From: Paramoeba atlantica
Taxonomy: Eukaryota > Protista > Discosea
Length of the DNA: 64,000 nucleotides
NCBI GenBank assembly: GCA_977017575.1
Contig: CDRNVI010000143.1
Location: 62,001-126,000 of the forward strand
Direction: 5' to 3'
In this document: piece after piece, positions 1,377 through 61,339 of the stretch
How positions within the stretch are numbered: the first letter of the stretch is position 1
How the letters are laid out: each line of letters begins with the position of its first letter
Notes under the pieces: generated by a model
Seen by the model: only the letters and a program-made list of their open reading frames with translations
What the model was told of the DNA's origin: nothing
Database searches by the model: none
Program-made: the position numbers and the translations under genes

Positions 1377-2243
<867 letters not shown>

Positions 2244-3843: not shown

Positions 3844-3874
<31 letters not shown>

Positions 3875-4925: not shown

Positions 4926-4944
4926 GCATGATTTCACTTCACCC

Positions 4945-5340: not shown

Positions 5341-5684
5341 CTCCTTCTTCCCTCCTCCTTCTTCCTCTTTCCCTTTTTTTTAGTTCTTTTTTTTTTTTAA
5401 TTTAATTCTTTTTTTTAATTTCTCTTTTTTTTTCTTTTCTTTTTTCTCTTTCCTCTTCTTCTCTCCTTTCGCTCTTTCCTCTCTCTCACCGGGTTGCCAA
5501 GGGAAAAGGGAAAGGAACGCAATTGCAAAGGTTTTTCAGGGCATTGAAAAAAAAATTCCCATAAAAATTTCCTTGTAAAATATTTTTTCGACCTCAGAAA
5601 AACAATTGAATTGTGCTGGTTTATTTTAGCACACAAAAAAAGATTTTAGGGCTCATAATTTTTCTGGCCTCGTTGGTTTTGTTT

Positions 5685-5718
5685 TGCCTTTTCTCTTTCT
5701 CTCCTCTTTTTCTCTCTT

Positions 5719-5754
<36 letters not shown>

Positions 5755-6280
5755 CTCTCTCTTCTCTTTTCTCTCTCTTTTTCTTTTCTCTCTCTTTTTT
5801 TCTTTTCCTTCTTTTTTTCTTTCTCTTTCTCGAACTTTTTTGCCCTTTGTGAATGGGACCGGATGGGGTTCTCTCTTTATTTCTTTTTATTTCATTGACT
5901 TTTCTTGTTTTTTTCTTCTCTTTTTTACTTTTATCTCTTCTCTTTTTTTTTTTTTTTCACTTTTTCACTTTCTCACTTTTTCTCTTTTTTTTGTTCCTCT
6001 TTTTCTTGTTCCCCTTTTTCTCGTTCCCCTTTCTTCCCTTTTTTAATGGGTTCTCTCTTTTCTTTTTTCCCTTTCCCCCCTTTTTTCTTTTTCTCTTCTT
6101 TTCTTTTCTTTTTGTTGATTTCTTTCCTTTTGTTTTCGATTTCTTCTTCGGTTTCTCATTTTTTTCTTTTTTTTTTTTTTCTATTTTCTCTTTCTCTTTC
6201 TCTTCTCTCTTCTCTTCTCTCTCTTCTCTCTTCTCTCTCTTTCCCCCCCTTCCCTTTCTTTTCCTTTTTCTTTTTTGAAA
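5685..6280 (+). repeat. Polypyrimidine (T/C) low-complexity tract
   Basis: Base composition; the F/L/S-only ORFs across it are artefacts. Confidence 0.85.
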
Positions 6281-8260: not shown

Positions 8261-8379
8261 GTCTTCGGTCATACCCAGTTGAAAGCACCCGATCCCATCA
8301 GAACTCGGAAGTTAAGCAGCTGTGGGCTCGGTTAGTAGAATGGTGGGTGACCACATTCGAATCCCGAGTGCTGAAGACC
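8261..8379 (+). rRNA. 5S rRNA
   Basis: 119 nt; GTCTTCGG pairs with CTGAAGAC. Conserved CATACC, CCGATCCCATCAGAACTCGGAAGTTAAGC and GTTAGTA...TGGTGGGTGACC segments. Confidence 0.95.
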
Positions 8380-8417: not shown

Positions 8418-11400
8418 TTTTTTTTTTTTTTTTCAATGAAAGAGATTTTTATTCGAAATAGATGGTTGTAAGAGAAGGGAATGGTTCTCACCCAGTGAGA
8501 GGAGGAACTGCAGAAAAAGGAGGTAGTACATGTGGAAAGAAGAGGGGGGAATGGAAATGTCATTTGGATTGAGAGATGATGAGAAGCACAGAGAGTGATG
8601 GGTCAAAAGGGGGTTGCTGGGTTTTAGATTTTCCTGTATGCTCATCATGTGGTTTGCCATTGCTTTCATTAGTGCAGCTGAAATCTTCTTCTTTGCTGTT
8701 CTTAAGAAGAGGGGGAGGGGGTTGGCATCCAGGACCTGGTCGTTTTGGAGGGCAATTGAGGCGAGGGACTGTAGGAGTGCACTAATGTCAGGGGATATTC
8801 CACCACCTGAGGATGAAGATGCTGGAAGGAAGATGACTTCACCTTGGAGAAATGGAAAGAGTTATTTGTTTAAGGGTCCGTTTCTCCTCAGGGGTGTCTC
8901 TGCCTTCCTGCATTAAAGTCTGTTTCAGTCAGACATCTGTCCACATATTCTCTGTGTTTCATGATCCTGGCATGGTGTGCAGCAGGTGAGAGGGTGTCGA
9001 GTATGGGGGGTCAGAGTGGGTTTTGGTGGGTGTTTGGATCACACAGCAAAAGTGGGGGGTTTTGTGGGTTGACACAACTCGGACATCAATACACAGATCC
9101 TGGTCGCCTTGCCACTCGCAGATTGTAAGATCAGGTTGCTTGTGTGACTTCCTGATTGGCCGGTAGGCTCCATCTCAGATTGTTGTTTTTCCCGCCCAGC
9201 TGGCAATGTTCTTGAGTTCTTTCACGGAGAGCATGGTGTCTTCTTGTGTGGTTCCTCTTCCACGACTGGTGCAATCTGAGAGGTGGAGGGAGGATGCAGC
9301 ACAGAGTTCTTTTTCACAGAATCCACACTTGACAGTCCCAAGTTCACAGAGAGCCCCAAGGTGTGGGTCAACTATGTCAAGCCTACATCGGTAGGCTGAG
9401 CGAAAATCTTCAGCATTTAAGGCTCGATATGGCTTTGGCCCAGAGGTGTCCTTGTCTGGGTAGGCTGTCATCCACAAGTGGGTGGTGGGGCCAACCTCAT
9501 TCTCACGGATTGCACGGCAGAGGTTTTTATCTTGTGTTGGGTCCATGATCTTCTTTTTGACATCCTGAAGTTCACAGGAGGTGAACTTCTTCTGTGGTTT
9601 GTAGTTTTCTCCAGTGCCCATTGAGTCAGATGGTGGCTCTGTCAATCGAGTTAGGAGCTCATGGACAGAGGTACCACTTGGCAGTTTCCACTCGCTCAAG
9701 ATGAAGCTTTCAAAATGGTCATATGCTTGGTGGAGAGCCTGGCGCTGGGGTGAGTCACTCTTCCAGAAGTCTTCAAAGAGGTTGATAAGTTCAGGTTTGA
9801 ACTCAGAGCAGGATCAGTAGACTGAGATCCAGGAGCCAAGGAAGGCTGCTTGGTGGGTGTTCTGAGAGTAGCTCAAGCCACCACCACCTTTTGACTTTGG
9901 AAGGCCTGCAGCTTCTACTCGAGAGAGATGGAGTTCTTTGTTTGGATGCAGGTGGGGGACTTGGAGGGGGTTGAGGAGGTAATTGATGTAAAGAGAGAGG
10001 TGTTGTGCGGCAGATGTATGTTAGTTTGGGTGTGATGGTTTTGACAAAAAGCTCGAGACTTTCATGGGGGTTGGAGAACATTATTAAACAGTGGTCTTGT
10101 GATGCTTGTTGGTATTCTTGAGCAAGGGTGTGAAGCCACTTGGAAATTTGAGTGTTCAGCCTGATGGGTGACCCTAGAACTGTGATTACTTCCACCTTCC
10201 CAATGCCAAGATTTTTGAGGTCATTGCTCCTGGGCGCTTCGGGAGAGAAACAGACCATTTTGCCCCTTTCTGTGCCAAGTTTGAGGTTGGCATTTGGGAG
10301 GACACTCTGGATCTGAGTGGTGATTTCTGCAATGGCAACTGGGCTCCCACAAACAAATATATCATCGACAAAGAGGAGAAGAAGAAGTGCATTCGGTGGA
10401 GCATCAACCTTCTGAAAGATTGGATTGAGGATTCCATGAAATCCCAGACAAAAGAAAATTGTCCCAAGGGGATCTCCTTGCTGGACACCCTCCTCCATGG
10501 TGAGGGTGTGGTTCTGGTCATGAGAGAGTGAGGGGTGTTGCTGAAGAATAGAAGGTGTAGAGGTATGGAAGTAATACAGGGGCCAGCTGGACTGTGCTCT
10601 CAAAGATGGTTTTTCTTGAGATGGAATTGAAGGCATTAACAATGTCCAGTTTCGCGGCATAATGTTGTGGGTGGAGGTGGAGATAGGCTGTAATATTGCT
10701 TTGTGGACCATTTCTGCACCACTTGGCAAGCATACACCATACTGATGGGACAATTTCTCAGGAATTCCCTCGTGTTGGACTTCAAGAACAAGTGCAATCG
10801 CTGCCCACCTCTTGAGAACTTCAGCAACACCAATTGGACGGATCCCTTTGTCCCCTTTTGCCAGAGGAATGAAGAGAGAGGTTGCCATGATGTTGTGTAT
10901 GGTTTCATTGAGTTTTTGGTTGGTGATTAAGACAGTCAATTCTTTGAGGGTTGAGCAGAGTTCTTGGTCTGTGCATAGGAGTGTGACAAACTCATAAGAC
11001 ATTCCTGAGAGCCCTGGTGTGCGGCCTTTTGGAAGTCTCCAAAGGGCCAGATCAAGTGAGTCAAAGGACTGAAACTCATCTTGTTCAAGGATTGCTGGTT
11101 TCCAGTCAGGAATTTCGGCTCGATCTGGTGGAGTCCACACCTGCTCAGATCTTGGGTAGAGGTTCTTCACAGTTTCACGATTTTCTGGGACTGAGAGATC
11201 CCTGAATCCACTCTTGGATTGAAGCTTCCTTGCAGCTTTGGAGAGATGTCCTTTTCTGACCTCTTCAATAATCTGGTCTGCCTTGGTTTTCTTGGTGGAC
11301 TTCTGCCTCCTCTTTTGCTTGAGTTTGCTGAGCTCGCCCTCAAGTTTTTTGTGGAGTCTCTCCCACTCAAAATTTCGCACCATGGTGCATCGAGATTTCA

Positions 11401-13570
11401 CTTCTTTCATTCCTCGAGTACCCCTTCTAAGGCAGCCAAAGATCCATTTTGGGAGGAGGATCAGGAGTTGGGGTATCTTATGAAAGAGGTGTCATACAGC
11501 ACAAAAAGTTTTGATGACTGTATCACAAAGGCAGAGTGGTACTGAGTCCATGTAGCGGAGGGGGATGTGTTTTGAGAAGGAGTCTCCTTCAAGAGAGAGG
11601 ATGAAGTTCATTGTAGTCTCTTCTTTGCTTCCATGAGGAAGGGTTGTAGAGTGCCCATGATTGAAGAAGAGTTGTTGGATGTGTTGTGGGTCTGGGTCGA
11701 GGATGGGTGTGATTCTCCAGGTGTTGTCAGGGCATCCTCTGTGTACTGCTAAACTTGTGATCCTATCTGCCAAAGAGTTGTTCTCGCGGTTTCTCCAGTT
11801 AATATGGTTTTCAGGGCTTGGGAGAATGGATGAGAGAGTGGACAATTTCCTTGTTCTCATGAATGACACAGAGTGATGAGCTTCCAACGCACCATCCATT
11901 TGGGTTGGTAGCAACAGATCCATCCCCACAGATGAAAAAGAAGTTGTCTTTGACATTTGTGAGCGAGATTTCAGGAGGCTGTGGTGCAGGTTTCCAGTGT
12001 TGCCAGAACTGTAGGAGAAAGGCTATTCTCCCCGCGCTACTTGCGATTTGAGAGAAGGGGGACGATATCTCATCTTGCTTTGTTTGTTGAGCATTTTTGA
12101 AATCTGAGGAGAGAATGGGAGTAAGGTCTTAGTTTTTTTGTTGGCCACCAAAGAAGTGGTTGATTCCAAGTCCAAGGAGGTCACAAGCTCTGCATGTTTG
12201 GAGGGAGCTTGTTCTTGCGCGATCCAAGTTTCTGAAGCGGGGGACAGTTAAGACTATATCTTCAAAGGAGCCATTTTCGAAGAGTTCAAGGATAAGGGAG
12301 AGGGAGGGAGGAGTTTGTTGAAAAGAAGGTGGGCCATGAGAAGAAGGGCGGTGGGAAAGTTGTTGGGGAGGGGGAGCGAGAGGGGAGTGAGAGGGGGTGT
12401 GGGAAGGGAGGTGGTGAGGTGGGCTTGGGGGGGGGCAAATGAGGTGGATGGGAAGGAGGGTGGAGAGGTGTGTGAGGTGAGGGGTGAGATGGGGGAGGAG
12501 GAAAAGGGGTGATGGGATGGTTTTCTGTGCTGTTGTGGCATTGTGTTGAACAATAATGCATTTGACAGTGGTTACAGGAGATGTGGGAGCCAACTTCTGC
12601 TTTACCATTGCATTCAGGGTTGTTACATGAAGGGGGAGGGGTGCTGGAGGGATCGAGATCAGGATTAAGATTGAGATGCAGAGAGGGATAGGGAGTGGGG
12701 GAGGGGAGTGGGGAGGGAGGGGGGGAGGGAAGTGGGAAGGGAGGGTGGGAGGGAATTGGGGAGGGAGGGTGGGAGGGGGGATTGGAGGGAGAGCAGGGAG
12801 GGGAGGTTAGGGATGGGAGAGGTTGGGGGGGGGGGGGGAGGAAGAGGGTGACAGAGAGTTTGTGACTTCCTGTGGTGGGAAAAGGAGCAGAATGTAAGGA
12901 GGCACTTCTCGCATCGGGAGACTATTACTTTTTGGTGTTGGCCTCTGCATCTTTGGTATGAGCAATTGCCAAGGAATTTTGGAGGATGTGAAGTTGTCTT
13001 CTGGGCCTGAGGATTGTCCATTCGATTTAGTTCTTTTTCTCTTTCTTTTCTGTTTCTTTCATTCTTTTCTTTTTCTGATTTTTCTCTTTCTTCCTCTTTT
13101 TTTCCATTCTTTTTCCTTCCTGTTTTTTTTCCTCCTCTATTTTCTTTTTCTTTTCATTCTCTTCCTTTCTTTTCTCTCTTTCTTCGTTGTTTCTGCTCCT
13201 GCTCTCTCGCTTTTTTGGGGTTCTCTTTGTCTTTTTCCTTCCTTTTCTCTTTCTCTGACCTCTTCTTTTTTTCCTTCTTTTTCTTTTTCTTGCTCTCCTT
13301 CTTGGCTGTGACTCTTTCTCCACTTGGCCTGAGTGAAGTTTTGGGAACTGAAAGTTTTCTGTGCTATCTGGTTTGAGGGTGCCCAGGATCGAGAGGTATG
13401 GCTGTGGCAATCTCGAAAATCTTTTGTTACATCAGGGGTGGGGAGCAGAGCTTTTGAAGGTGGGGTTTGAGAGGAAGAGGGGAGAGTGGGTATTGATTTG
13501 GATGAAGTGGGAAGTGATTGGTGGTGTGGTTGGTTTGTGGTTTGTTGTTTGTTGTTTTTCAAGGGGGAAA
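8418..13570 (-). mobile_element. CRE/SLACS-clade non-LTR retrotransposon (RT + CCHC + restriction-like endonuclease), degenerate
   Basis: Minus-strand poly(A)16 at 8418-8433 with AATAAA at 8448-8453. RT motifs GIRPIGVAEVLKRWA, GVQQGDPLG and FVDD; CGFC-x8-HLSDC knuckle; REL motif QPDLTICEW...CIDVRV just after an in-frame TGA (9175-9177). The 5' boundary is approximate. Confidence 0.85.
8433..11480 (-). pseudogene. CRE-like RT/endonuclease ORF broken by stops and frameshifts
   Basis: ORF-track pieces 9803-11410, 9175-9699 and 8433-8669 plus intervening frames are collinear with CRE pol (KGHLSKAARKL, AAHHARIMKHREYVDRC, FLPASSSSGGG). Confidence 0.8.
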
Positions 13571-29998: not shown

Positions 29999-32900
29999 CT
30001 ACCCGCGAGCAGACTTAGGGAGATTCTTCTTAATTCTTCTTCCCGTACTCGAAAACCTCTCTGGTTCCTCTTCTTCTGATTCTTCTTCTTTCTCTTCCTC
30101 TTTCTTCTTTCTTGGTTCCTTCTTCTCTTGTTTCTTGTCTTTCTTTTTCCAATAATCTTCGATCACCTTGTACGAGTGGAAGGAACTCACAGCTTCCCAC
30201 GACTCCTCCGCATTTTTCCACTTCACTAAATATTCTTGTCCATCCTCACCCATCCGATCGTCAACCACTTTTAAAATCTCTAGTATTTTCCCTTCTCCTT
30301 CCTCCAAATCTCCTTGGATCTCTTTTAATCTCGCTGCAGGTACTTCATTTTTCAACAAGGCGCATGTTGCATCGATCAAATTGTATCCTTTTGTTGCTTG
30401 ATTGTACCCCACCACTTTGAACGGTCCTTCCCAGCGTTGATCACTCTTCGCACCTCTTACATCTACCATCTTCATAACCTCGGTTCCTGCCTCCCAAATT
30501 TTCTCTTTCTTGGCCTTATTTTTCCTTTCTGAATATTTCCTTCCTGCTTCCTTGTAACGTCCAAAAATGGCTGGATACACCGCATCGATCATCTTCTTAT
30601 TTCGTTCAATTAAATCTTCTTCTGACACTTCTTGTAACTCTATACTCTGATAATCCTCAAACTTGTTCAACTTCCTTGCAAACATCACAGCAAATGGACT
30701 CGACATATGTCTCCCCACAATCCGATCATTTAAGGACATTTGGACCACTGGCAACATTTTCGCCCAATTCTCCTGGTAGCCTTTCAGCAGCTTGAACAAT
30801 AATCGTTTTGTTTCTCCCACATAGCGTTCTGCTGCTCCATTCTGGTTTGGGAAATAAGTCAAAACGGCTCTTGCCACAAACTCAGCTGCCTTGCGGAACT
30901 CTTCTACAACATCATTCAAAAAGGAAGGGTCATTGTCCATTTGCAACACCTTGGGGATTCCAAAGTTAGCGAAAATCTTCAATAGACCCCATGCTACTTG
31001 CACCGCTTCTTTTGACACTAGGGGTCGCAAAAGCACAAACCGCGTAGCCACATCAATCACTAATAGGATTACAGTGAAGCCATCTGAAGATACTTTCAAA
31101 ATAATCAGATCCATTGCAATGTGATCGAACGGAAGTTTCGACAAAACTGGGGTGATGGGGTGAAATCCCACTCTCCCAACATTGTACATCAAACATTCTA
31201 GGCACCCTTTCGCTACTTTGTCGCACAGGGTCCTCAATCCATCCCAATAAAATCCGTCTCTCACCATAGCTTCAAATAGCCCGAGTCCTCCAATATGACT
31301 CTCTTTGTGTTTCACTTTTATCAAGGCCAGTTTGTCTTCTTCTGCAGGTTCCTTCTTTCCTAAAATATCTTTCATCAACTTTTTCATTTTTTTTCCAATC
31401 CCTGTGGAAGGGACCTCATCTACCACCAGCTCATGTGAATCAAAAACACCCTTAACTCCCGCCATATCTCTAACTGGTTCCCCAAAAATCCGAGAGAGAG
31501 AGTCAGGTAACACATGGTTCATTCCCTTGCAATGTATCACATAGAAATCGAAATTCAACAGGAAGTGCAGCCAATCTAAGATCATAAAGTTCTTCGATTG
31601 GTTCAAATACTCCAATGCTTTATGATCCATCTCAATACAAAACCTCCTCCCCAACAGCAGGTGCCTCTGAAAAAACAAATCAGCAATCGTTGGGAGCTGG
31701 TAGTCTGGGGCTTCTGATTTCACATTCACCCCTCTCAGGTCCATACAAAGCCGAATATCATCTTCCTTCTTGCCACCTGAAACCTTGGGAGCTGCTACTA
31801 GAGGGGTGTTCCAGAGATTTCGCACTGAGGACACATCCTCCAGAGGAACTATCCACCCTTTTTCCAACCATTCAGTAACTCTCTGTTGAACTTTGCCACT
31901 TAATCTTTCTGGAATCGGGTACTGTCGCGTAAAAACCGGCTTTGGATTGAGCAATGAAATCGGAAAATGCGAATTCCTGATATTACAACAAGTCCCATCA
32001 GGCAATCTCTGATTCTCTTCAAGAACTTCTTTAATCCCTCCCATTATTTTCTCAACTTCTTTCTCAGGCAGGCGTGTCTCTTCAGATGGCCCACTCCATC
32101 CCTCTTTGTCCGCTAAGTTAGTCTCATGGAACAACTTCTTCCTTTCTGGGAACACTGGTGGGATTCCTTCGATTTCAACACCAAGTTTCGCTCCATCCGC
32201 CGCACTCAAAAGTACTCGATCTTTCCCTAAACCAGGTAAAGTCCAAATCAAAATCTCAGCTTGGCCTTGGATTGTCGAAACTTTGACTTTCTTTGCTGTG
32301 TCTGTTTCTTGAACACGTCCAGAAATTCGTCGGACTTGAAAATTTCTCTTCACTAAATCTCCTTCTAAATGGTCAAAAACAGAAGGGTCAGCGAGTGTTG
32401 CACTTGCTCCTGAGTCAAAGATCGCCCACACTTCCACATCATTCCTCCCAAGAGAGATTGGAATCTTGGGGAGCCCATCTGTATCTTCTTCCGCCCCCAA
32501 ACCAAAAAATCCTTCTTCAGTTAAAGCTAAATAAGCTTCCTCATCCTCAAAATCAGATGTTGAAACATCATTTCCAGGAACCCCCAGGTTTGATTCCTCT
32601 TCGGCAAGTCCAGCCAACCTCGGTTCGGCTTTCTTTTTTGGACACTCATTTGCATAGTGACCCTTTTCCCGACAAGAGAAACATCTTATCTTGGCCAAAT
32701 CGCGTCCTCTCCTCTCTTGAGGCTCATCTCTGCGCAATTGCTGCCATGGACCTTTACCTTCTGCTCCACCCCCTCGAGCCCAACACTCTTTCTCAAGATG
32801 GCCAGGTTTCCCACAATTCCGGCAGTTTGTTGGTCTCCTTGGCTCTACAGGACCAGGGGCACGAAAATGGTTAAGCAGGGCTGAACCCTCCCTTGCAGCT

Positions 32901-33835
32901 CCAATATCAATCAGATTGGTTACCGAGATTCGTGGCTCAAAAAGGTAGTCACTTCCACACAATAATTCCCAGAAGGGCTGATAACCTGGGAGAACTGCTT
33001 TTTCCAAAAGCTCCTTCGCCTCTCGAGAACGAGGATCTGTCCCTGAAGCTGCTACCAGCAGATTAAACTGATACCCAAACGCGTCGAGTCTCTCACTTGG
33101 CTTTTGCTGGAGACTTTTCAAAGCTTTCAAAATCACCAACTTCCACCTTGGACCTAGCAACTTTACTGGAACCAACGCGAGCAATTCACGGAATGGACGG
33201 TTTTCTCTCATCTTTAGAAACCCACTGATCAAACTGGGTGTGGCTTCGAACAGATATCTCTTTCGATCAGGCTCTGGGACACATCGGTTCTCCATACAGG
33301 AATGGAAGCGAAAAACAAAATCGAGCAACTGGAAAATCGTGACTTTTTCTTGCAGTTTCGGCAAATCTTGGATTTGGGGCAGTCTTTTCTTGTCTTTTGG
33401 CTTTTGTTGTTTCTCTACCCCAATTACATCATAAGCCATCAAAGTACTTCTCAAGCTCATCAACCTCCGGTTGACTAGTTCAACCCTCGCCCTTTCCGCG
33501 GCTGACAAACTATCTTTCAACAAAAGAGCCGTATTCTCTTTTCGTAGAACTCGATATTTCTCTCGAAGGGCCTCAGCCTCCTCAAAATCTTCCTCTTTCT
33601 CTACAGATTTGGAGGACTTCTGTACCGTCGAACTCGTACCCAGCGAACTCGATAAACTTGATTGCTCTGGTTCCGAACCAATCGAAACCAATCCTTGATT
33701 CGAACACATCGAACTCGATCCTCGATTCGAACACATCGAATGTCTTTTCATGGATCCAAGCTCCGTACAAAACGAAACTTCTTCATCAAAAATTGACGAC
33801 ACATCGTCAAGCGAATCGAATAATTCAAATGACAT
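29999..33835 (-). CDS. Gag-protease-(truncated RT/RNase H)-integrase-chromodomain polyprotein, 1278 aa, open
   Basis: Two CCHC knuckles, protease IFDSGA, RT N-terminus (WNTPLV...RLCMDLRGVN) fused directly to the RNase H C-terminal half (RHLLLGRRF...DSLSR), integrase HKESH/CLEC and D,D,E (AMDL, MDND, AAERYVGE), chromodomain EYLVKWK...ESWE. No YxDD motif. Confidence 0.93.
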   Translation of the reverse strand: MSFELFDSLDDVSSIFDEEVSFCTELGSMKRHSMCSNRGSSSMCSNQGLVSIGSEPEQSSLSSSLGTSSTVQKSSKSVEKEEDFEEAEALREKYRVLRKENTALLLKDSLSAAERARVELVNRRLMSLRSTLMAYDVIGVEKQQKPKDKKRLPQIQDLPKLQEKVTIFQLLDFVFRFHSCMENRCVPEPDRKRYLFEATPSLISGFLKMRENRPFRELLALVPVKLLGPRWKLVILKALKSLQQKPSERLDAFGYQFNLLVAASGTDPRSREAKELLEKAVLPGYQPFWELLCGSDYLFEPRISVTNLIDIGAAREGSALLNHFRAPGPVEPRRPTNCRNCGKPGHLEKECWARGGGAEGKGPWQQLRRDEPQERRGRDLAKIRCFSCREKGHYANECPKKKAEPRLAGLAEEESNLGVPGNDVSTSDFEDEEAYLALTEEGFFGLGAEEDTDGLPKIPISLGRNDVEVWAIFDSGASATLADPSVFDHLEGDLVKRNFQVRRISGRVQETDTAKKVKVSTIQGQAEILIWTLPGLGKDRVLLSAADGAKLGVEIEGIPPVFPERKKLFHETNLADKEGWSGPSEETRLPEKEVEKIMGGIKEVLEENQRLPDGTCCNIRNSHFPISLLNPKPVFTRQYPIPERLSGKVQQRVTEWLEKGWIVPLEDVSSVRNLWNTPLVAAPKVSGGKKEDDIRLCMDLRGVNVKSEAPDYQLPTIADLFFQRHLLLGRRFCIEMDHKALEYLNQSKNFMILDWLHFLLNFDFYVIHCKGMNHVLPDSLSRIFGEPVRDMAGVKGVFDSHELVVDEVPSTGIGKKMKKLMKDILGKKEPAEEDKLALIKVKHKESHIGGLGLFEAMVRDGFYWDGLRTLCDKVAKGCLECLMYNVGRVGFHPITPVLSKLPFDHIAMDLIILKVSSDGFTVILLVIDVATRFVLLRPLVSKEAVQVAWGLLKIFANFGIPKVLQMDNDPSFLNDVVEEFRKAAEFVARAVLTYFPNQNGAAERYVGETKRLLFKLLKGYQENWAKMLPVVQMSLNDRIVGRHMSSPFAVMFARKLNKFEDYQSIELQEVSEEDLIERNKKMIDAVYPAIFGRYKEAGRKYSERKNKAKKEKIWEAGTEVMKMVDVRGAKSDQRWEGPFKVVGYNQATKGYNLIDATCALLKNEVPAARLKEIQGDLEEGEGKILEILKVVDDRMGEDGQEYLVKWKNAEESWEAVSSFHSYKVIEDYWKKKDKKQEKKEPRKKKEEEKEEESEEEEPERFSSTGRRIKKNLPKSARG

Positions 33836-50964: not shown

Positions 50965-53900
50965 ATGTCATTTGAATTATTCGATTCGCTTGATGATGTG
51001 TCGTCAATTTTTGATGAAGAAGTTTCGTTTTGTACGGAGCTTGGATCCATGAAAAGACATTCGATGTGTTTGAATCGAGGATCGAGTTCGATGTGTTCGA
51101 ATCAAGGATTGGTTTCGATTGGTTCGGAACCAGAGCAATCAAGTTTATCGAGTTCGCTGGGTACGAGTTCGACGGTACAGAAGTCCTCCAAATCTGTAGA
51201 GAAAGAGGAAGATTTTGAGGAGGCTGAGGCCCTTCGAGAGAAATGTCGAGTTTTACGAAAAGAGAATACGGCTCTTTTGTTGAAAGATAGTTTGTCAGCC
51301 GCGGAAAGGGCGAGGGTTGAACTAGTCAACCGGAGGTTGACGAGCTTGAGAAGTACTTTGATGGCTTATGATGTAATTGGGGTAGAGAAACAACAAAAGC
51401 CAAAAGACGAGAAAAGACTGCCCCAAATCCAAGATTTGCCGAAACTGCAAGAAAAAGTCACGATTTTCCAGTTGCTCGATTTTGTTTTTCGTTTCCATTC
51501 CTGTATGGAGAACCGATGTGTCCCAGAGCCTGATCGAAAGAGATATCTGTTCGAAGCCACACCCAGTTTGATCAGTGGGTTTCTAAAGATGAGAGAAAAC
51601 CGTCCATTCTGTGAATTGCTTGCGTTGGTTCCAGTAAAGTTGCTAGGTCCAAGGTGGAAGTTGGTGATTTTGAAAGCTTTGAAAAGTCTCCAGCAAAAGC
51701 CAAGTGAGAGACTCGACGTGTTTGGGTATCAGTTTAATCTGCTGGTAGCAGCTTCAGGGACAGATCCTCGTTCTCGAGAGGCGAAGGAACTTTTGGAAAA
51801 AGCAGTTCTCCCAGGTTATCAGCCCTTCTGGGAATTATTGTGTGGAAGTGACTACCTTTTTGAGCCACGAATCTCTGTAACCAATCTGATTGATATTGGA
51901 GCTGCAAGGGAGGGTTCAGCCCTGCTTAACCATTTTCGTGCCCCTGGTCCTGTAGAGCCAAGGAGACCAACAAACTGCCGGAATTGTGGGAAACCTGGCC
52001 ATCTTGAGAAAGAGTGTTGGGCTCGAGGGGGTGGAGCAGAAGGTAAAGGTTCATGGCAGCAATTGCGCAGAGATGAGCCTCAAGAGAGGAGAGGACGCGA
52101 TTTGGCCAAGATTAGATGTTTCTCTTGTCGGGAAAAGGGTCACTATGCAAATGGGTGTCCAAAAAAGAAAGCTGAACCGAGGTTGGCTGGACTTGCCAAA
52201 GAGGAATCAAACCTGGGGGTCCCTGGAACTGATGTTTCAACATCTGATTTTGAGGATGAGGAAGCTTATTTAGCTTTAACTGAAGAAGGATTTTTTGGTT
52301 TGGGGGCGGAAGAAGATACGGATGGGCTCCCCAAGATTCCAATCTCTCTTGGGAGGAATGATGTGGAAGTGTGGGCGATCTTTGACTCAGGAGCAAGTGC
52401 AACACTCGCTGACCCTTCTGTTTTTGACCGTTTAGAAGGAGATTTAGTGAAGAGAAATTTTCGAGTCCGAGGAATTTCTGGACGTGTTCAAGAAACAGAC
52501 ACAGCAAAGAAAGTCAAAGTTTCGACAATCCAAGGCCAAGCTGAGATTTTGATTTGGACTTTACCTGGTTTAGGGAAAGATCGAGTACTTTTGAGTGCGG
52601 CTGATGGAGCAAAACTTGGTGTTGAAATCAAAGGAATCCCACCAGTGTTCCCAGAAAGGAAGAAGTTGTTCCATGAGACTAACTTAGCGGACAAAGAGGG
52701 ATGGAGTGGGCCATCTGAAGAGACACGCCTGCCTGAGAAAGAAGTTGAGAAAATAATGGGAGGGATTAAAGAAGTTCTTGAAGAGAATCAGAGATTGCCT
52801 GATGGGACTTGTTGTAATATCAGGAATTCGCATTTTTCGAGTTCATTGCTCGATCCAAAGCCGGTTTTTACGCGACAGTACCCGATTCCAGAAAGATTAA
52901 GTGGCAAAGTTCAACAGAGAGTTACTGAATGGTTGGAAAAAGGGTGGATAGTTCCTCTGGAGGATGTGTCCTCAGTGCGAAATCTCTGGAACACCCCTCT
53001 AGTAGCAGCTCCCAAGGTTTCAGGTGGCAAGAAGGAAGATGATATTCGGCTTTGTATGGACCTGAGAGGGGTGAATGTGAAATCAGAAGCCCCAGACTAC
53101 CAGCTCCCAACGATTGCTGATTTGATTTTTCAGAGGCACCTGCTGTTGGGGAGGAGGTTTTGTATTGAGATGGATCAGAAAGCATTGGAGTATTTGAACC
53201 AATTGAAGAACTTTATGATCTTAGATTGGCTGCACTTCCTGTTGAATTTCGATTTCTATGTGATACATTGCAAGGGAATGAACCATGTGTTACCTGACTC
53301 TCTCTCTCGGATTTTTGGGGAACCAGTTAGAGATATGGCGGGAGTTAAGTGTGAGCTGGTGGTAGATGAGGTCCCTTCCACAGGGATTGGAAAAAAAATG
53401 AAAAAGTTGATGAAAGATATTTTGGGAAAGAAGGAACCTGCAGAAGAAGACAAACTGGCCTTGATAAAAGTGAAACACAAAGAGAGTCATATTGGAGGAC
53501 TCAGGCTATTTGAAGCTATGGTGAGAGACGGATTTTATTGGGATGGATTGAGGACCCTGTGCGACAAAGTAGCGAAAGGGTGCCTAGAATGTTTGATGTA
53601 CAATGTTGGGAGAGTGGGATTTCACCCCATCACCCCGGTTTTGTCGAAACTTCCGTTCGATCACATTGCAATGGATCTGATTATTTTGAAAGTATCTTCA
53701 GATGGCTTCACTGTAATCCTATTAGTGATTGATGTGGCTACGCGGTTTGTGCTTTTGCGACCCCTAGTGTCAAAAGAAGCGGTGCAAGTAGCATGGGTTC
53801 TATTGAATATTTTCGCTAACTTTGGAATCCCCAAGGTGTTGCAAATGGACAATGACCCTTCCTTTTTGAATGATGTTGTAGAAGAGTTCCGCAAGGCAGC

Positions 53901-54636
53901 TGAGTTTGTGGCAAGAGCCGTTTTGACTTATTTCCCAAACCAGAATGGAGCAGCAGAACGCTATGTGGGAGAAACAAAACGATTATTGTTCAAGCTTCTG
54001 AAAGGCTACCAGGAGAATTGGGCGAAAATGTTGCCAGTGGTCCAAATGTCCTTAAATGATCGGATTGTGGGGAGACATATGTCGAGTCCATTTGCCTTGA
54101 TGTTTGCAAGGAAGTTGAACAAGTTCAAGGATTATCGGAGTATAGAGTTACAAGAAGTGTCAGAAGAAGATTTAATTGAACGAAATAAGAAGATGATCGA
54201 TGCGGTGTATCCAGCCATTTTTGGACGTTCCAAGGAAGCAGGAAGGAAATATTCAGAGAGGAAAAATAAGGCCAAGAAAGAGAAAATTTGGGAGGCAGGA
54301 ACTGAGGTTATGAAGATGGTAGATGTAAGAGGTGCGAAGAGTGATCAGCGCTGGGAAGGACCATTCAAAGTGGTGGGGTACAATCAGGCAACAAAAGGAT
54401 ACAATTTGATCGATGCAACATGCGCCTTGTTGAAAAATGAAGTACCTGCAGCGAGATTAAAAGAGATCCAAGGAGACTTGGAGGAAGGAGAAGGGAAAAT
54501 ACTGGAGATTTTAAAAGTGGTTGACGATCGGATGGGTGAGGATGGACAAGAATATTTAGTGAAGTGGAAAAATGCGGAGGAGTTGTGGGAAGCTGTGAGT
54601 TCCTTCCACTCGTACAAGGTGATCGAAGATTATTAG
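50965..54636 (+). CDS. Gag-PR-(deleted RT)-IN polyprotein, 1223 aa; premature TAG at the end of the chromodomain
   Basis: Near-identical to the copy 1 protein. TGG>TAG at 54634-54636 removes 50 aa (the copy 1-equivalent stop is at 54784-54786). A 15-nt deletion relative to copy 1 lies near 53350. Confidence 0.9.
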   Translation: MSFELFDSLDDVSSIFDEEVSFCTELGSMKRHSMCLNRGSSSMCSNQGLVSIGSEPEQSSLSSSLGTSSTVQKSSKSVEKEEDFEEAEALREKCRVLRKENTALLLKDSLSAAERARVELVNRRLTSLRSTLMAYDVIGVEKQQKPKDEKRLPQIQDLPKLQEKVTIFQLLDFVFRFHSCMENRCVPEPDRKRYLFEATPSLISGFLKMRENRPFCELLALVPVKLLGPRWKLVILKALKSLQQKPSERLDVFGYQFNLLVAASGTDPRSREAKELLEKAVLPGYQPFWELLCGSDYLFEPRISVTNLIDIGAAREGSALLNHFRAPGPVEPRRPTNCRNCGKPGHLEKECWARGGGAEGKGSWQQLRRDEPQERRGRDLAKIRCFSCREKGHYANGCPKKKAEPRLAGLAKEESNLGVPGTDVSTSDFEDEEAYLALTEEGFFGLGAEEDTDGLPKIPISLGRNDVEVWAIFDSGASATLADPSVFDRLEGDLVKRNFRVRGISGRVQETDTAKKVKVSTIQGQAEILIWTLPGLGKDRVLLSAADGAKLGVEIKGIPPVFPERKKLFHETNLADKEGWSGPSEETRLPEKEVEKIMGGIKEVLEENQRLPDGTCCNIRNSHFSSSLLDPKPVFTRQYPIPERLSGKVQQRVTEWLEKGWIVPLEDVSSVRNLWNTPLVAAPKVSGGKKEDDIRLCMDLRGVNVKSEAPDYQLPTIADLIFQRHLLLGRRFCIEMDQKALEYLNQLKNFMILDWLHFLLNFDFYVIHCKGMNHVLPDSLSRIFGEPVRDMAGVKCELVVDEVPSTGIGKKMKKLMKDILGKKEPAEEDKLALIKVKHKESHIGGLRLFEAMVRDGFYWDGLRTLCDKVAKGCLECLMYNVGRVGFHPITPVLSKLPFDHIAMDLIILKVSSDGFTVILLVIDVATRFVLLRPLVSKEAVQVAWVLLNIFANFGIPKVLQMDNDPSFLNDVVEEFRKAAEFVARAVLTYFPNQNGAAERYVGETKRLLFKLLKGYQENWAKMLPVVQMSLNDRIVGRHMSSPFALMFARKLNKFKDYRSIELQEVSEEDLIERNKKMIDAVYPAIFGRSKEAGRKYSERKNKAKKEKIWEAGTEVMKMVDVRGAKSDQRWEGPFKVVGYNQATKGYNLIDATCALLKNEVPAARLKEIQGDLEEGEGKILEILKVVDDRMGEDGQEYLVKWKNAEELWEAVSSFHSYKVIEDY

Positions 54637-54816
54637 AAAAAGAAAGACAAGAAACAAGAGAAGAAGGAACCAAGAAAGAAGAAAGAGGAAGAGAAAGAAG
54701 AAGAATCAGAAGAAGAGGAACCAGAGAGGTTTTCGAGTACGGGAAGAAGAATTAAGAAGAATCTCCCTAAGGCTGCTCGCGGGTAGTGTTTTTGTTTCAA
54801 AAACACTGAGGGGGGA

Positions 54817-55048
54817 TGTGCACAGGGTGCTAGTTTAGCCCCAGGGGAATTCAGTGAAAGATGAAGCTCAAGAAGGAGAAGAATTATGAACTTGTAGAGT
54901 TCAGATATTAGCTGAAGAAGAGAAAGAGAAAGAAACTCACTTGGGAGTTTCAGAATAAAAAAAGCGCTTGAAGACCATTCTTGAGTCCATTGTTCTCTGT
55001 GTGTCAGAGTGACTGTGTGTCTGGTGTGGAGTCAGGAGGTTGTTCACT
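54817..55048 (+). repeat. 3' LTR of gypsy copy 2
   Basis: TGTGCACAGG...GTTCACT, 232 bp, preceded by the PPT. Confidence 0.95.
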
Positions 55049-55231
55049 GTCCGTGCGACAGAAGGGTTGGCAAAACAAGGGAAGCACAGTCTTTTCTCTT
55101 GCAACCAGAGCAGACCCTCGATGTTCTTTAAAAATGACCTTTGTAGCCAAATCACCCGACCTGGTGATTGTCAAACTCTTTATGGTGAAGTTGATGGTCT
55201 GAAAAAAAATGAGAAGGTTTATTTTCTTCTT

Positions 55232-55262
<31 letters not shown>

Positions 55263-55490
55263 CTAAATGTGACAGGTTCCATGTGACAGGTTCCTTTTCT
55301 TGCAAATGTCTTTCAATCAAAAAATCGAAAACTCTGTACACTCTCAACTTGTTACTCTGCCACACAAGTTGAAAAAGAAGTTGAAATGTTGGTTGAATGA
55401 TGATACATTGGAAACCCAAGCGACTTATCAAAAGCTTGAAGAAATGCACCCCCTTGCTCGAACCACATATAGTGAGGTGATGGATTTTGT
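55049..55490 (+). pseudogene. piggyBac-like transposase relic (second family), 3' part, with probable intron 55217-55289
   Basis: The frame resumes after the TSD (VRATEGLAKQGKHSLFSCNQSRP...). A GT...CAG intron joins it to VPFLANVFQSKNRKLCTLST; YSEVMDFV resembles the YNxxMxxVD motif. Truncated there. Confidence 0.7.
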
Positions 55491-55519
55491 AATCCAAGGT
55501 TTCAAAAAAGACTGACTGA

Positions 55520-57938
55520 AGAAGTCATTTGTCTGCCCGTTGGGAAGCAAGTTGTGAAGAAAGCTGTTCAAAAAGGTTAATTTTTTTTTTTGTGTGTGTG
55601 TTTTTGAAGGATTCTGATGAATGACATGGGTTATCAAAAAATCCAAATTATGCGATCAATATTTCAGCGAGGCTTAGATCCTTTGTCTGGGGAGCTAATT
55701 CAGTTGAAAACACCAGAGTTTGAAATTCCATTTCCAAAACTTCCTGCTCCGAAGCCTGTGATGGATTTTGGGGAGAAAATGTTGTCTGCATTGGAGCTTG
55801 AAGCAAAGTAAGAATTTTTTTTTTTTGTAATAAGCTTCTTTTCTCCTCCTCAATGAAAACAATTTGCTCAAAAGATAAACATATAGGTTTCATGAACTCC
55901 CTTCTGAGTATGGGGTTAAAGGTGGTTATCGAAAGTTGGAAGAAGTTGTTGAGAAAAGACTGAAAGCAATGCTCCAATGTTCGAAAGTTCAACAATCTCT
56001 CATCTTTTAAGAAGGCAAATATCAAATTTTAGTGAATATGTTCACTGATGGTGCTCCGGAGAGTAAACAAGTAAGTAGAAAAATTATTTTCTTTTTTTTT
56101 GAGGGGGAGCATAGAGGAAAAGAAACAAAACAAGATTTAATTGAAAATCTATTTTTCAGATGGGTATGACAAATACATATTTGCGATTTGTGAACTTTGT
56201 TGGAGTTGGAAGTTCACCAACATTGATGCCTTGGATCTGTGGTGGGAATTTCAAAGAAGATGATGAAGTGAGCAAATGGCTTTGTGAGAATGTTTTAAAC
56301 CCTGGAATTGTAGCGGTGGAAAAGAATGGTGTTTCAATTCCATGTGAAATCGATAATACCAAAACAAATCTGTACCATTGCCATTTTCTTCCAATTGGTG
56401 GCCTTTCTTACCAAAGTAAAGTGGCTGGTCATCAAGGTTGTTCTGCAACTTATTTCTCTGTTTATTGGCTTGATGTGACTTGTGACAATGCTGACATTCC
56501 TCGAGACAAGTTACGAAGGCGAACATTGGCAAAAATGAAAGAAATGGGGGAAAAAGTTCGAGTGAAATGGCAAGAAATCGTTTCAGATAAGTCGATAGAT
56601 GAAAATGCAAGAGATGCGATCCTTCAACAGTTTATTCGGAAAGAGAATTATAGCCAAAAAGGAGCCCCTTTGTTAGTGATTTGTGAGCGTTTTACTCCAA
56701 ATGGTCCTCTTCATGGCAAGTGCTCTGCAACTTTGGCCTTATTTCTTACTATTGTTGAGTTTGCAAATTCCAATAAGGAATTTGGGAAAAAGATGTTACA
56801 AGAGATGGTGGAGCGGATGAAAAGAGTTTCTGGATTGCTCTCTTTTGCAAAGACGATTGAATGGAAGTATATTCTTGAAACTGAGGAAGGAAAGAAGCTG
56901 AAATTTCGGTTGATTGGAGAGCAAGCAACAAGGCTATTGCAAAATTATCACAAGTTGGTTGTTGAAGCGATTTATTCCTGTTTTCCTCGCCATCAGTTGC
57001 CACCCTTGTTCGATTTGAAGTTACAAGCTTTTTCGTTTATTTGTCAGCGAATTAAATTTATGAGCTCTTTTTGGGAATGTTTGAAATTCACTGATGATGA
57101 AGGGGAAGATTTGGAATCAAGTGAGGTTCAACACCTTTTAGATGAAAGGACGAGAACAGGAAAGCAAATTATTCAGATTATGAAATTAATATTTCCAAGC
57201 TTGAATATTATTCCATGGTTTTATACTCTTTGTTTTGACTGCCCTTATTTTTACAAAAAAGTCTATGAAAATTATGGTTTGCTTTCCTTTCTTTTCTTTC
57301 CCCCCCTCTGCTTTTTTTTTTTTATTGATTATCTCCTTTCATTCATTCTTTTTCAAATAGGAGTTGGACCAGCTGTCAGTAGTTGCCAAAGCGGAGAGTT
57401 ACGAAATTTAATTCAAAAGCAACTTGTGAAAAAATGTGGCTATGGCGCAATGAAGTATGAGATAGCCGCAAAATTTGACGATTTTCGATTTTTGGTTCAC
57501 CTCCTTTGTCCAGTGAAACTATCTGTTCGGGGACACAATATCAAGGATCGTGTATCGTTTGTTGAGAAGGGAAAATGTTGTTTTTGTGTTGTGGAAGATG
57601 TTGGGGAAGAAAACAAAGTATGTCCAAGTTGTCAAGCGATTGAAAAGAAGATGATTGATTTTTGTGAAAATGGAGTTCCACAAACAACAAGGGAACTCAT
57701 TTTAAAGAATTATGTAGTTCCATCTGAGGAAGAGACAGGAGAGTCTATGGAGGAGTTAGAACAGGAGATCTTTGAGGATGAGGAGGTAGATGAATTCTCG
57801 TTGAAGGAAGAGGAAGAAGAAGAGGAAGAGGATGAATTTTCTTTTGATGGTGAAGAAGAGGGAGAAGAAGAGGAGGAGGAAGAAGAGGAAAAAACGAAAG
57901 CAAAACCACAAAGATTACGTTTTCGATCACAATCTTAA
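55520..57938 (+). CDS. RAG1/Transib/Chapaev-like DDE transposase-derived gene, multi-exon, 5' end missing or unclear, possibly a pseudogene
   Basis: Inferred introns 55576-55609, 55808-55886, 56071-56159 and 57277-57360 keep the frame. Motifs: VNMFTDGA (D600-like), IGGLSYQSKVAGHQGCSATYFSVYW (D708/ZnC2 spacing), GPLHG, LIGEQATRLL, WFYTLCFDCP (ZnH2 spacing), SCQSGELRN (E962-like). In-frame TAA at 56008-56010 unless removed by a 36-nt intron. Confidence 0.65.
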
Positions 57939-57953
57939 GAAATAATAAATTTA

Positions 57954-58427
57954 TTAATTTGAGATATAAAGATCGTTGATTGGAAGTCCTCCTTTTGTCC
58001 ATCCTTGAACAAAAAAATGAACTGCAAGAGTTCCAAGATTTGCAGAAAATCTCCATACAACCGGATACTTTTTATGAGCGACAATCCACATCTTTTGACC
58101 ATTTTTGAATTTTTTCGTCATTGGGTTGAAGAGTCCCTTTGATGCAAGTCCTGAAAAAATTTGTTCAAAAGTTTTTGTTTCATAAAATTGGATCAGAAAA
58201 ACTGGCGCTGACTTCTTGTGAGGAGAAAGTTCGCCACCACTTCTCAAAAGATGAGGGATGATGAGGAGTTCAAACAGAACTGCATTGACCTTTGTTCGAT
58301 AGATTCGCATACTACAAGCAGTTGAGGGAATTTTTGAAAAAAGATCATGGGCAATCCAATCAAGCTCAATAACAACAGAATCAACAATTGTATCACATGA
58401 AAACTTGCTTGCAATATCGCTCTCCAA
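57954..58427 (-). CDS. Hypothetical protein (last exon), convergent with the RAG1-like gene
   Basis: 157-codon open frame with protein-like composition; its stop is 15 bp from the RAG1-like stop; upstream exon(s) are likely at ~58500-58640. Confidence 0.45.
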   Translation of the reverse strand: MESDIASKFSCDTIVDSVVIELDWIAHDLFSKIPSTACSMRIYRTKVNAVLFELLIIPHLLRSGGELSPHKKSAPVFLIQFYETKTFEQIFSGLASKGLFNPMTKKFKNGQKMWIVAHKKYPVVWRFSANLGTLAVHFFVQGWTKGGLPINDLYISN

Positions 58428-58903
58428 AAGAGAAAGAGCACAAGGAGGACACTTTTCTTTTTGGTTTTTCTTTTGGTTTGTAGTTTTGGTTTGTTTACGC
58501 TTTGATGTGATGAGGGTTCAAGAGAGATGTAGCAATATGGAACAGAGTTTCCTCTTTTAAAGAAAGATTCATCTGCCTCAAGGAGTTTTCGAGAAGGAGT
58601 TCAGGTCCGAACAGAGTGAGCAGTTTGTTCAGACATTTGAGAAAAACAAAAAACAAAAAACAAAAAACAAAAAGCAAAAAAAAAACAAAAAAAAAACAAA
58701 GTGCTTGAACAAAATCGTTTTGGCTGTATTTTTCTAATAAAAAAAAAGAAAAAAAGTAATCTGAAAAGAATCCAATACGAAAATTGCTACTTTCTTTCCT
58801 TTCTTTCAAATTTTTGATTCTTTTTTTCAAAATGCTCCCCAAATTCAATCTCAAAAGAAAAAAACAAATTCGATCAGAAAGAAAGAAAAGAAGGAGATTA
58901 GAA

Positions 58904-60235
58904 ATGGATGTTTTGCTCTGTCAACCAATTACCCATGATTCTTTCTCTTCTTCTTCGTGGACATTATCGCCAAAAAACCCTTTTCCTCTCTCAACATTAT
59001 TGTTACCTCCTGTTCATCTTTCAGAGCCATCATATGAGGATAGTTTCTACTCTCCTCCTTCACCTTTATTATTTGATCGTTTTCGTTTTTGGACTGTAAG
59101 AGAACTTGTAAAAACAAATAAGAGCTTAGTGTCTTGGGAAGTGCTTGAAAAGAAGGTTGTGTTTCCGTTCGATCATCTTGTTTTTCTTTTTTTCTTTCTT
59201 TTTTTTTCTTTCTTTTTTCTCCCTTTTTTTTTCTTTTCTTTTTTTCTTTCTTTTTTTTCTTTCTTTTTTCTCCCTTTTTTTTCTCCCTTTTTTTTCTTCC
59301 TTTTTTTTCTCTCTTTTTTTCTCCTTTTTTCTCCTTCCTCTTTTTTTTCCTTCCTCTTTTTTTTATTATTATTATTCTCATTTTTTATAAATATCTTTTT
59401 TTGAATCCACTCCACACACAATATCCAGGTTTCTGAAATTGTTGGAAGAATGAGTCAAAAGAAAGCAAGTGGTTCACATGGACTCTCAAAACCGATGGAT
59501 TATTCAAAACCAGGACGACCACATTATTCTGACAAGGAAACCAGGGAAAAAGCACTGTTGTTGATGAGAACTTATTTTGAAATCAAACCAGCAGAGCCAG
59601 TTCCAGTTCTTTTTAAATCTTTTGAAGTTCCAAAACAAAATTCTCAAACAACAACAATTCTCTTTGATGATGTGAACAGGATCCCATTAGATCGCCTCTC
59701 AGATTCGAGCTGGAAGGCCCATTTTCCTGGTGCCACTGAAGATTTTTATCAAAAATTGGCGAATCCAGGTGGTTGTAATACCCAACAAAACCTTTTGAAA
59801 GATGAGAATTTATTGAAGGAATTGACCGGAAATGTTTATTTTAAATCGGAGAGTGGCTTGAAGGATATGTTTTGGTTGGAATCGGTTGGATCTCCTGAGG
59901 AGGTATATGAGCTCTCAATCCTCCAATGTTTTATATTTAATCAAACAAAGAGAAATTGTCGAGGATGGTGTTTGTTAACGATGGGAATTCATGCAAAGCA
60001 AGCGAATCCGATTCGGGAATATGTTCAAGCAGGCCAAACGAATGATATGATTGTTCCATTTGTGGAATCTCTTTTCGGAGGATATGTGATCTTTGAGTTA
60101 CGTTTCGAAAAATGGGTTTCTTCAACAATCAAAGAGACATCTTCATCTTCCCCACCCCCACCAATATTTGATAAACAGAGAGAATGCATTGAAGACATTC
60201 ACAAAAAGTTTGATGCAACCGGACAGCAAATGTGA
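58904..60235 (+). CDS. Hypothetical two-exon protein (~350 aa); may continue past 60235 via a frameshift
   Basis: Exon 58904-59155, GT...CAG intron 59156-59428, exon 59429-60235 joined in phase 0; no recognised domain. Confidence 0.55.
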
Positions 60236-60670
60236 CTCTTTCAACAAAGATTTTCTGCTTGATTGAAGAATTCTGGCTCTCAATTGCTCATGGGACAGTT
60301 CTTCATTGTGACAAAAAAGACATTGGACTTTCTCTTCTCTTTTATTTAGGATTTGGATAGGAAAATACACCTAGTTTTGGATTTACCGAGTTGGGTTACA
60401 TTTGGAAACACAGTCCTGGCTCTGTTGCTGGTATTCGAGCAGCGACATATTATCATATGTCTTTGAAAAATGAAAATGGATTTCGAATTATGGGTGCTGG
60501 GTTTGTGAATCCAATATCTGAAAAAAAAAAAAAAAAATTACCACCTTAACAACCATCAAAAAGTTGCTTACGACACCTTTAAACACTGGATTGCTACCAA
60601 AAAAAATGGACCTGAACTTTATTTTTAAAATTCGCATTTTCTCAAAAATCGGATGTGGTGGAAAAAGAAG

Positions 60671-60730
60671 AAAAAAGAACGAAAAAGAACGAAAAAGAAC
60701 GAAAAAGAACGAAAAAGAACGAAAAAGAAC
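60671..60730 (+). repeat. (GAAAAAGAAC)n 10-bp tandem repeat
   Basis: About six units. Confidence 0.85.
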
Positions 60731-61339
60731 GAAAAGAAAAAAAGAAGAAAAGAAAAGAAAAAAGGAAGAAACGAAAAGAAAGAAAAAAGAAAAAAAGAAA
60801 AAGAAAAAGAAAAAGAAAAAGAAAAGAAAAAAAAGAAGAAAGAAAAACTTCTGAAAGAGCAAATTGATAAAGACCCAAACCAAGTTTTAAAAAGAAAAGA
60901 GAAATAGAAAAGAGAGAAGAGAGAGAAGAGGAAGAGGAAGAAAAAACCCTTTGAAAGATTGATGAGAAGTAGTTTGACACACACACCGGTTTAAAAAAAA
61001 GAAAAAAGAAAAAGAAAAAAGAAAAGAAAAAAGAAAAAGAAAAAGAAAAAGAAAAGAAAAAAAAGAAAAAGGAAAGAAGAGAAAGAAAGAAAGAAAAAGA
61101 AAAAGAAAGAAAGAAAGAAAAGAGAAAGAAAAGAGAAAAAGAAAAGAGAAAAACTTTTGAAAGAGTCAATCGACAAGAAGGTAGTTCAATATAATCAGGT
61201 TTTAAAAAAAAGAAAGAAAAAAGAAAGAAAAGAAAAAGAAAAGAAAAAGAAGAAAAAAGAAGAAAAAAGAAGAAAAGAAGAAAAAAGAAAAAAGAGGTAG
61301 CCTGGGCCAGTAGTAAGGGTCTTTTTGACTTTGCGCACC

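Follow-up and report, generated by a model that had tools for sequence, protein, structure and literature searches.

RAG1, the enzyme which assembles the antibody genes, arose from a Transib-like transposase, and the Transib transposons are known to produce target duplications of 5 bp. To our knowledge, the deeper history of this enzyme class is documented by few lineages and by only three kinds of solved structures. The wider CACTA-Mirage-Chapaev-Transib (CMCT) clade has been described as having CA..TG termini and target duplications of 2-5 bp, together with the motifs C(2)C and H(3-4)H, and ESTA has been tied to RAG1 only through HHpred (Kojima 2025, PMC12730594). In the present study, a stretch of 64,000 nucleotides of Paramoeba atlantica (assembly GCA_977017575.1, contig CDRNVI010000143.1, positions 62,001 to 126,000), here called the window and numbered from its first letter, has been analyzed for a transposase gene which was predicted from the sequence to be of RAG1/Transib type. 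We consider it quite probable that window positions 55493-60660 represent one dead copy of a cut-and-paste DNA transposon which is 6.04 kb long, occurs in multiple copies, encodes a transposase of RAG1-type fold and belongs to a rare and deeply diverged lineage beside or within the CMCT clade.

The word-index protein search returned a 91%-identical cluster of 19 mostly fragmentary members from a single ENA assembly, along with two distant relatives from JGI metagenomes. As the 592-residue open reading frame (ORF) of the window is itself present in this ENA assembly (contig ctg4003l), the other cluster members are paralogues in one genome. The window was compared with six fetched paralogous copies on other contigs (blastn, MAFFT), and the identity was found to be 96-98% in the multiple alignment and 93-98% per blastn segment; the similarity spans 55493 to 60660-60666, with nothing outside. 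Three of the copies are full length (L003 6499-12533, L007 6311-12356 and L008 7423-13468; 6035-6046 bp) and their flanks are mutually unrelated. The right terminus falls on the identical base in all copies (...CGGATGYRGTG), and the left terminus is common to the three full-length copies and L004, with a matching terminal inverted repeat (TIR). The left TIR of the full-length copies, CACCGCATTCGATTTTTCAAAAATCGCG, pairs imperfectly, as an inverted repeat, with the right end, CACCGCATCCGATTTTTGAGAAAATGCG, and the element ends of about 28 bp have the general form 5'-CACCGCAT...GTG-3', where CACCGCAT was probably also the ancestral right TIR. The CAC-starting TIRs (left, CACCGCATTCGATTTTTC...; right, as the reverse complement, CACCGCATCCGATTTTTG...) which the original prediction proposed to look for were found on full-length paralogues on other contigs of the assembly. 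All three full-length copies are bordered by target duplications of 3 bp (TAA, AGT and AGT), none of which extends to 4 or 5 bp. The element is a genuine TIR DNA transposon, which is terminated by CAC...GTG and duplicates 3 bp of its target. Strain-to-strain synteny was also considered for the 5.1-kb similarity and was rejected, because the flanks are unrelated and target duplications are present.

The element carries a transposase, a conserved partner gene lying tail-to-tail with it, and an orphan gene. In all seven sampled copies the transposase has at least one stop or frameshift, and no intact paralogue, for which the original prediction proposed to look, is found among them. The private substitutions of the copies are overwhelmingly C>T or G>A, with L002 (142 of 153) and L007 (111 of 118) as examples, and within the TIR, CG has decayed to TG or CA; the C>T/G>A excess points to cytosine deamination or a process like repeat-induced point mutation acting on repeats.

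The window copy has been truncated at 55493 and has lost the first 755 bp of the element, including the left end. A left TIR was sought across the whole window and none was found, and the right TIR has no long left-end counterpart there either. In the alignment, exon 2 is short by 83-84 nt which are present in every other copy. The in-frame TAA inside the FTDG exon originates from a -2/+2 frameshift pair private to the window copy, as the other copies and the contigs of the DNA runs have TT extra after 56004 and 2 nt fewer at 56019; this exon is open in L003 and L008. The second catalytic Asp is replaced by Gly (GGC 56400-02), base 56401 being A in all other copies and in all contigs of three DNA runs, which gives GAC (Asp). 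This is the sole change at the compared RAG1-type positions that is private to the window copy. Further, the window has TPNG where TPDG is found elsewhere (at 56700, A>G in the other copies). The main exon (1116 nt) is open in the window copy alone among the seven, and a 592-codon ORF (56160-57938) remains open by reading through the 84-nt intron in frame. Due to the missing left end and first 755 bp, the exon-2 deletion, the stop in the first-Asp exon and the Gly at the second Asp, the window copy cannot work. It is a pseudogene fragment, dead transposon debris, and the claim of an intron-containing working transposase gene does not hold for it.

The transposon is bordered immediately on its left by an unrelated repeat, which is seen in the window (50124-50698 and 55048-55490), in L004 (5279-6287) and in L009 (left of 2725). 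The window and L009 share a 966-bp deletion junction (...GATTTTGTAA|TCCAAGG...) and have different right flanks, while in L004 the same left-hand repeat is followed by an untruncated left end. The shared junction, together with the untruncated end of L004, shows that the truncation is a 966-bp deletion which was later duplicated. Hence, the truncated copy has itself been duplicated, by segmental duplication or within a larger unit.

The motifs and exons of the transposase gene were checked by six-frame reading of 55280-57940, and all the motifs of the original prediction were confirmed at their positions (Table 1). Four GT-AG introns had been proposed, of which three (55808-55886, 56071-56159 and 57277-57360) give in-frame joins and are supported by uninterrupted homologues, whereas the first of the four (55576-55609) sits at the copy-specific deletion of 83-84 nt. 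The intron-free homologues P0018, P0003, P0019, P0024, P0022 and P0037 are colinear across the three introns; the joint ...APESKQ|MGMTNTY is matched, uninterrupted, by P0003, P0018 and P0019, and the joint ...YENYG|VGPAVSSCQSGE by P0018, P0024, P0022 and P0037. As the spliced product is colinear with uninterrupted relatives, the FTDG exon belongs to the long ORF. One sequencing run is possibly RNA and the others look like DNA, and the three introns are predicted from this colinearity. The remainder of the exon ending at 55575 has been removed by the truncation. P0018, P0024, L001 and L006 all conserve the CxxC-(13)-CxxC motif downstream of the catalytic Glu, and its model has fair confidence. 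The motif could represent a C-terminal zinc ribbon in a family without the usual RAG1/Transib zinc site.

Table 1. Features of the transposon copy in the window (positions are those of the window).
Feature	Position	Strand	Remarks
Transposon copy, decayed and 5'-truncated	55493..60660	+	positions ~756-6035 of the full-length 6.04-kb element
Upstream exon tail (...RFQKRLTEEVICLPVGKQVVKKAVQK)	55493..55575	+	end of a 112-codon ORF in L008 (7912-8250)
Exon (MNDMGYQKIQIMRS...ALELEAK), minus 83-84 nt near its start	55610..55807	+	homologous to P0018 residues ~25-80
First-Asp exon, FTDG (GAT 56047-49), broken by TAA 56008-10	55887..56070	+	
Main exon: second catalytic position, S/W positions, TPNGPLH, alpha-helical insertion domain	56160..57276	+	
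G-x6-V-x-G-x7-Y-x-S-x2-W block	56400-68	+	within PIGGLSYQSKVAGHQGCSATYFSVYW (56391-56468)
Ser/Trp at the places of the C(2)C ligands	56451-68	+	main exon
TPNGPLH	56694-56714	+	PLH at 56706-14
IGEQATRLL	56913-39	+	main exon
FYTLCFDCP	57219-45	+	end of the alpha-helical insertion domain
Last exon: catalytic Glu, CxxC...CxxC, acidic tail, stop codon	57361..57938	+	
SGELRN with the catalytic Glu	GAG 57396-98	+	last exon
CxxC-(13)-CxxC, zinc-ribbon-like	57576-57632	+	downstream of the catalytic Glu
Partner gene, conserved C-terminal domain (~145 residues)	57954..58427	-	tail-to-tail with the transposase gene
Third gene, orphan ORF, shortened in the window	59450..60235	+	329 codons in L008
Right TIR	60633..60660	-	minus-strand 5'-CACCACATCCGATTTTTGAGAAAATGCG; unique match in the window

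An exhaustive profile search of 1.84 billion representatives gave only 24 relatives of the transposase, all from metagenomes or assemblies except one from NCBI, and the family was found to occur in the protist and a handful of environmental eukaryotes. The uninterrupted relative P0018 (657 residues) has the full layout, with the motifs FCD134SAPES, AAD220LANMS, TPDAPLH324GK, TPWLFTLCKDAPHF, SCENGE510 and CxxC...CxxC, and D, D and E are retained in most relatives. Pfam scans of all exon pieces and 19-22 family members at E up to 1 gave nothing meaningful, four long members gave no match at E up to 10, and the Pfam RAG1 domain is absent among the scanned relatives. Family profiles searched against the PDB at E up to 10 matched neither RAG1 or Transib nor any transposase chain; a PDB match to DsrC (E 0.003, 65 residues) is weak and was judged to be due to chance. 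The sequence and profile search against RAG1 and Transib suggested earlier has thus returned no match in Pfam or the PDB. As far as these searches reach, the family is a rare and so far undescribed variant of a known transposon type.

The G-x6-V block is present with the spacing of 19 known from RAG1 D708-C727, as predicted, whereas its G is the mutated second catalytic Asp and not a family feature. In the members covering these positions, the RAG1 zinc ligands C727, C730, H937 and H942 correspond to Ser, Trp/Tyr, Tyr/Phe/Thr and Asp, a correspondence which is set by motif spacing and coarse structural ranges and not by residue-level superposition. The non-ligand residues are identical in state even in relatives which are only 35-48% identical. 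Judging from the compared sequences, the absence of C(2)C and H(3-4)H is the ancestral state of the family and not a recent loss.

In the structure model of P0018, built from the family alignment, the helical insertion domain is confident and the RNase H part poor, the mean predicted local distance difference test score (pLDDT) being 58.8; the model of the 592-residue window ORF has a mean pLDDT of 59.4. In Foldseek, ranks 1-46 for the P0018 model consist entirely of RAG1, BbRAGL and HzTransib matches (best E 1.3e-5). Such a structural comparison had been proposed in the original prediction, and the contrary outcome named there, a best match to hAT, Mutator or a non-transposase, did not occur. 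In the exhaustive VIA search, the top positions went to the same six chain families. Several structural alignments end at residue 414 of the window ORF against RAG1 963, which puts the window residue E413 (GAG 57396-98) on RAG1 E962. The structural alignments to RAG1 and Transib have 9-17% identity. Moreover, language-model features point to RAG1 clusters with a score of 0.95, and the best shapes in the ESM Atlas are cnidarian proteins with template modelling scores of 0.47-0.51. In a broad sense, the models support a RAG1/Transib-type fold with colinear D-D-E for the transposase. The predicted architecture would lead from an RNase H-like core with two Asp residues through a long all-helical insertion domain to the catalytic Glu, which starts the C-terminal part.

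The partner gene begins right after the transposase stop on the opposite strand, and its upstream part is interrupted in the window copy. Homologues in the same position and orientation are found in L006, L010 and L011, and five independent lineages have been counted overall. The partner domain of the window family has 55% identity over 138 residues to the gene next to the L001 transposase, while the two transposases are 48% identical. For the partner, no Kelch, PHD or other Pfam match was obtained, the PDB-profile, atlas and word-index searches gave no named relative, and the language-model features gave none either. A second gene in convergent orientation is also a feature of RAG1-RAG2 and ProtoRAG; in two-gene transposons of the RAG1-RAG2 type (ProtoRAG, TransibSU) it encodes a RAG2-like protein with a Kelch propeller, whereas the partner of this family is a domain of about 145 residues without Kelch or PHD match and with no sign of a RAG2-like propeller. 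In L008, the third gene shows an H-R-D...H pattern, and homologues of this gene are found in the same assembly only. It has no Pfam match at E up to 10 and no atlas match, and no similarity was found to the genes adjoining the L001 relative.

In comparison with the published descriptions of the CMCT lineages, the family is best read as a lineage near or within this clade. It shares with the clade the CA..TG termini (here CAC...GTG), a duplication in the range of 2-5 bp (here 3 bp), a DDE transposase in which a long insertion separates the second Asp from the Glu, and multi-gene elements; as in case of ESTA, the link to RAG1 is visible only to structure-aware methods. It differs from the clade in having neither C(2)C nor H(3-4)H in the members covering these positions, in showing no detectable sequence similarity to any named lineage, and in its conserved tail-to-tail partner gene. 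In HzTransib (6pqn/6pqx) and RAG1/BbRAGL (4wwx, 6b40) the order D, D, helical insertion, E is the same, with the Glu falling on E962, and the CAC ends are those of the recombination signal sequence heptamer and of the Transib TIRs. On the other hand, the family has a 3-bp duplication against 5 bp, it lacks the ZnC2/ZnH2 site, and its TIR has no evident heptamer-spacer-nonamer layout. EnSpm/CACTA elements are alike in the 3-bp duplication, the CAC-starting ends and the large multi-gene elements with introns, whereas the family termini read CACCG(CAT) and not CACTA, no CACTA transposase was matched in Pfam, and the zinc motifs are absent. Several points weigh against a placement near or within CMCT. 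Both C(2)C and H(3-4)H, which are absent here, are regarded in the literature as common to the whole group, and the Pfam and PDB searches have given no sequence or profile link to any named transposase. The window's own model reached a best E of 0.078 in Foldseek, which is not significant alone. The models are of middling quality and, because the RNase H-like part is poorly modelled, the fold match mainly rests on the helical insertion domain. We know of no CACTA, Mirage or Chapaev transposase structure in the PDB; as RAG1 and Transib are the only solved CMCT representatives, the fold match denotes a large group and cannot say which branch is nearest. As regards the introns, no splice joints were found in the sole possible RNA run, which has two short contigs.

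Other explanations were considered. A true member of the Transib/RAG1 lineage, that is a protist Transib which has decayed in the window copy, would account for RAG1, BbRAGL and HzTransib being the sole strong structural matches, for the ends beginning with CAC, for the D-to-Ser spacing of 19 as in RAG1 D708-C727 and for the language-model features. Since the duplications are of 3 bp in all three full-length copies and the C(2)C/H(3-4)H ligands are absent family-wide, this membership has been rejected and we hold it to be very improbable; moreover, similarity to RAG1/Transib chains or Pfam models at the level of hidden Markov models was not obtained, and the fold match itself does not discriminate among the CMCT branches. 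Hence, of the original assignment to the RAG1/Transib/Chapaev lineage, the RAG1-type fold, the colinear D-D-E and the CAC ends stand, whereas Transib/RAG1 membership does not. An unrelated new DDE superfamily, in which the helical insertion resembles that of RAG1 through convergence or simply because helical bundles are common, would account for the absent zinc motifs, the poorly modelled RNase H part and the absence of a sequence link to any family. It leaves aside that two independent models both give a colinear alignment with its end precisely at the catalytic Glu, that the spacing of the local motifs (around D2, around D..H, before the Glu) agrees with RAG1, and that CAC...GTG ends with a short duplication fit the CMCT group; this explanation therefore appears improbable, though less so than Transib membership. 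The open 592-codon ORF (56160-57938), in the only copy of the seven with an open main exon, might suggest a working or domesticated host gene and not transposon debris. Such a gene is hardly credible with a stop in the preceding exon, the N-terminal exons missing, 83-84 nt of exon 2 deleted and the catalytic Asp mutated. Moreover, the stretch belongs to a set of many copies which are 96-98% identical and have TIRs and duplications, and no transcript was seen in the possible RNA run of two short contigs. A diverged lineage beside or within CMCT accordingly remains the preferred placement. The argument of the original prediction that an amoeba-like host would extend the range of a lineage known mainly from animals is weak, because animals are not the main hosts of the wider clade (CACTA/EnSpm and kin).

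An intact element of this family would have inverted ends of about 28 bp, 3-bp duplications and an intron-containing DDE transposase along with the small partner and the orphan gene. By analogy with RAG1 and HzTransib, the enzyme would bind the CAC ends and nick at the element boundary, and the released element would then be inserted across a 3-bp stagger. Any role of the partner in these steps would likewise be conjectural.

Further observations were made on rearranged copies and on the flanks of the transposon. A rearranged derivative is present in L007 (1093-3504, 2.4 kb) and in L003 (15815-16984, cut by the locus end). It combines the leftmost 1.1 kb with an internal piece in inverted orientation, and in L007 the rightmost 0.4 kb is present too; both TIRs are found in the L007 derivative, which lacks a target duplication. 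Several DNA runs have loose ends at window 55784 which agree with the derivative junction. A long, purine-rich low-complexity tract (GAAAAAGAACGAAAAA-type repeats, 60661-60990) begins exactly at the right end of the transposon and stands in place of the original right flank. A chromovirus-type long terminal repeat (LTR) retroelement (50699-55047, plus strand, ORF 50965-54636) has been inserted in the repeat bordering the transposon, and the empty site of this insertion is seen uninterrupted in L004 (5845-5860). A second chromovirus-type LTR retroelement lies at 29999-33835 on the minus strand, and both have a zinc knuckle, protease, integrase and chromodomain. On the short contigs of the environmental relatives L001, L010 and L011, inverted-repeat searches turned up nothing beyond low-complexity or internal repeats.

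Elsewhere in the window, a complete ribosomal DNA unit is present on the minus strand at 39780-46601, comprising the large-subunit (39780-43824), 5.8S (44142-44297) and small-subunit (44506-46601; about 2.1 kb, which is long) rRNA genes, and three transfer RNA genes lie just downstream of it (37770-39523). A polyubiquitin gene (1440-2243, plus strand), a PB1-domain ORF (6645-7622, minus strand), a 5S rRNA gene (8261-8379, plus strand) and a reverse-transcriptase ORF (9803-11410, minus strand) were also identified.

The window copy itself is ordinary debris, and the value of the finding rests with the family, which has kept the RAG1-type architecture and the CAC ends, lacks the zinc site and always has the partner in a RAG2-like position. 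A bolder proposal, that the family is an undescribed RAG1-fold branch at superfamily level which has dispensed with a zinc site retained by every described relative and depends on an invariably linked convergent partner, is in our view rather unlikely. If true, it would represent a second, independent solution of the kind 'RAG1 plus obligate partner' and would help to ask which of the RAG parts are ancestral. Once placed and tested, the family could show which core features of RAG/Transib are dispensable and how often two-gene arrangements have arisen.

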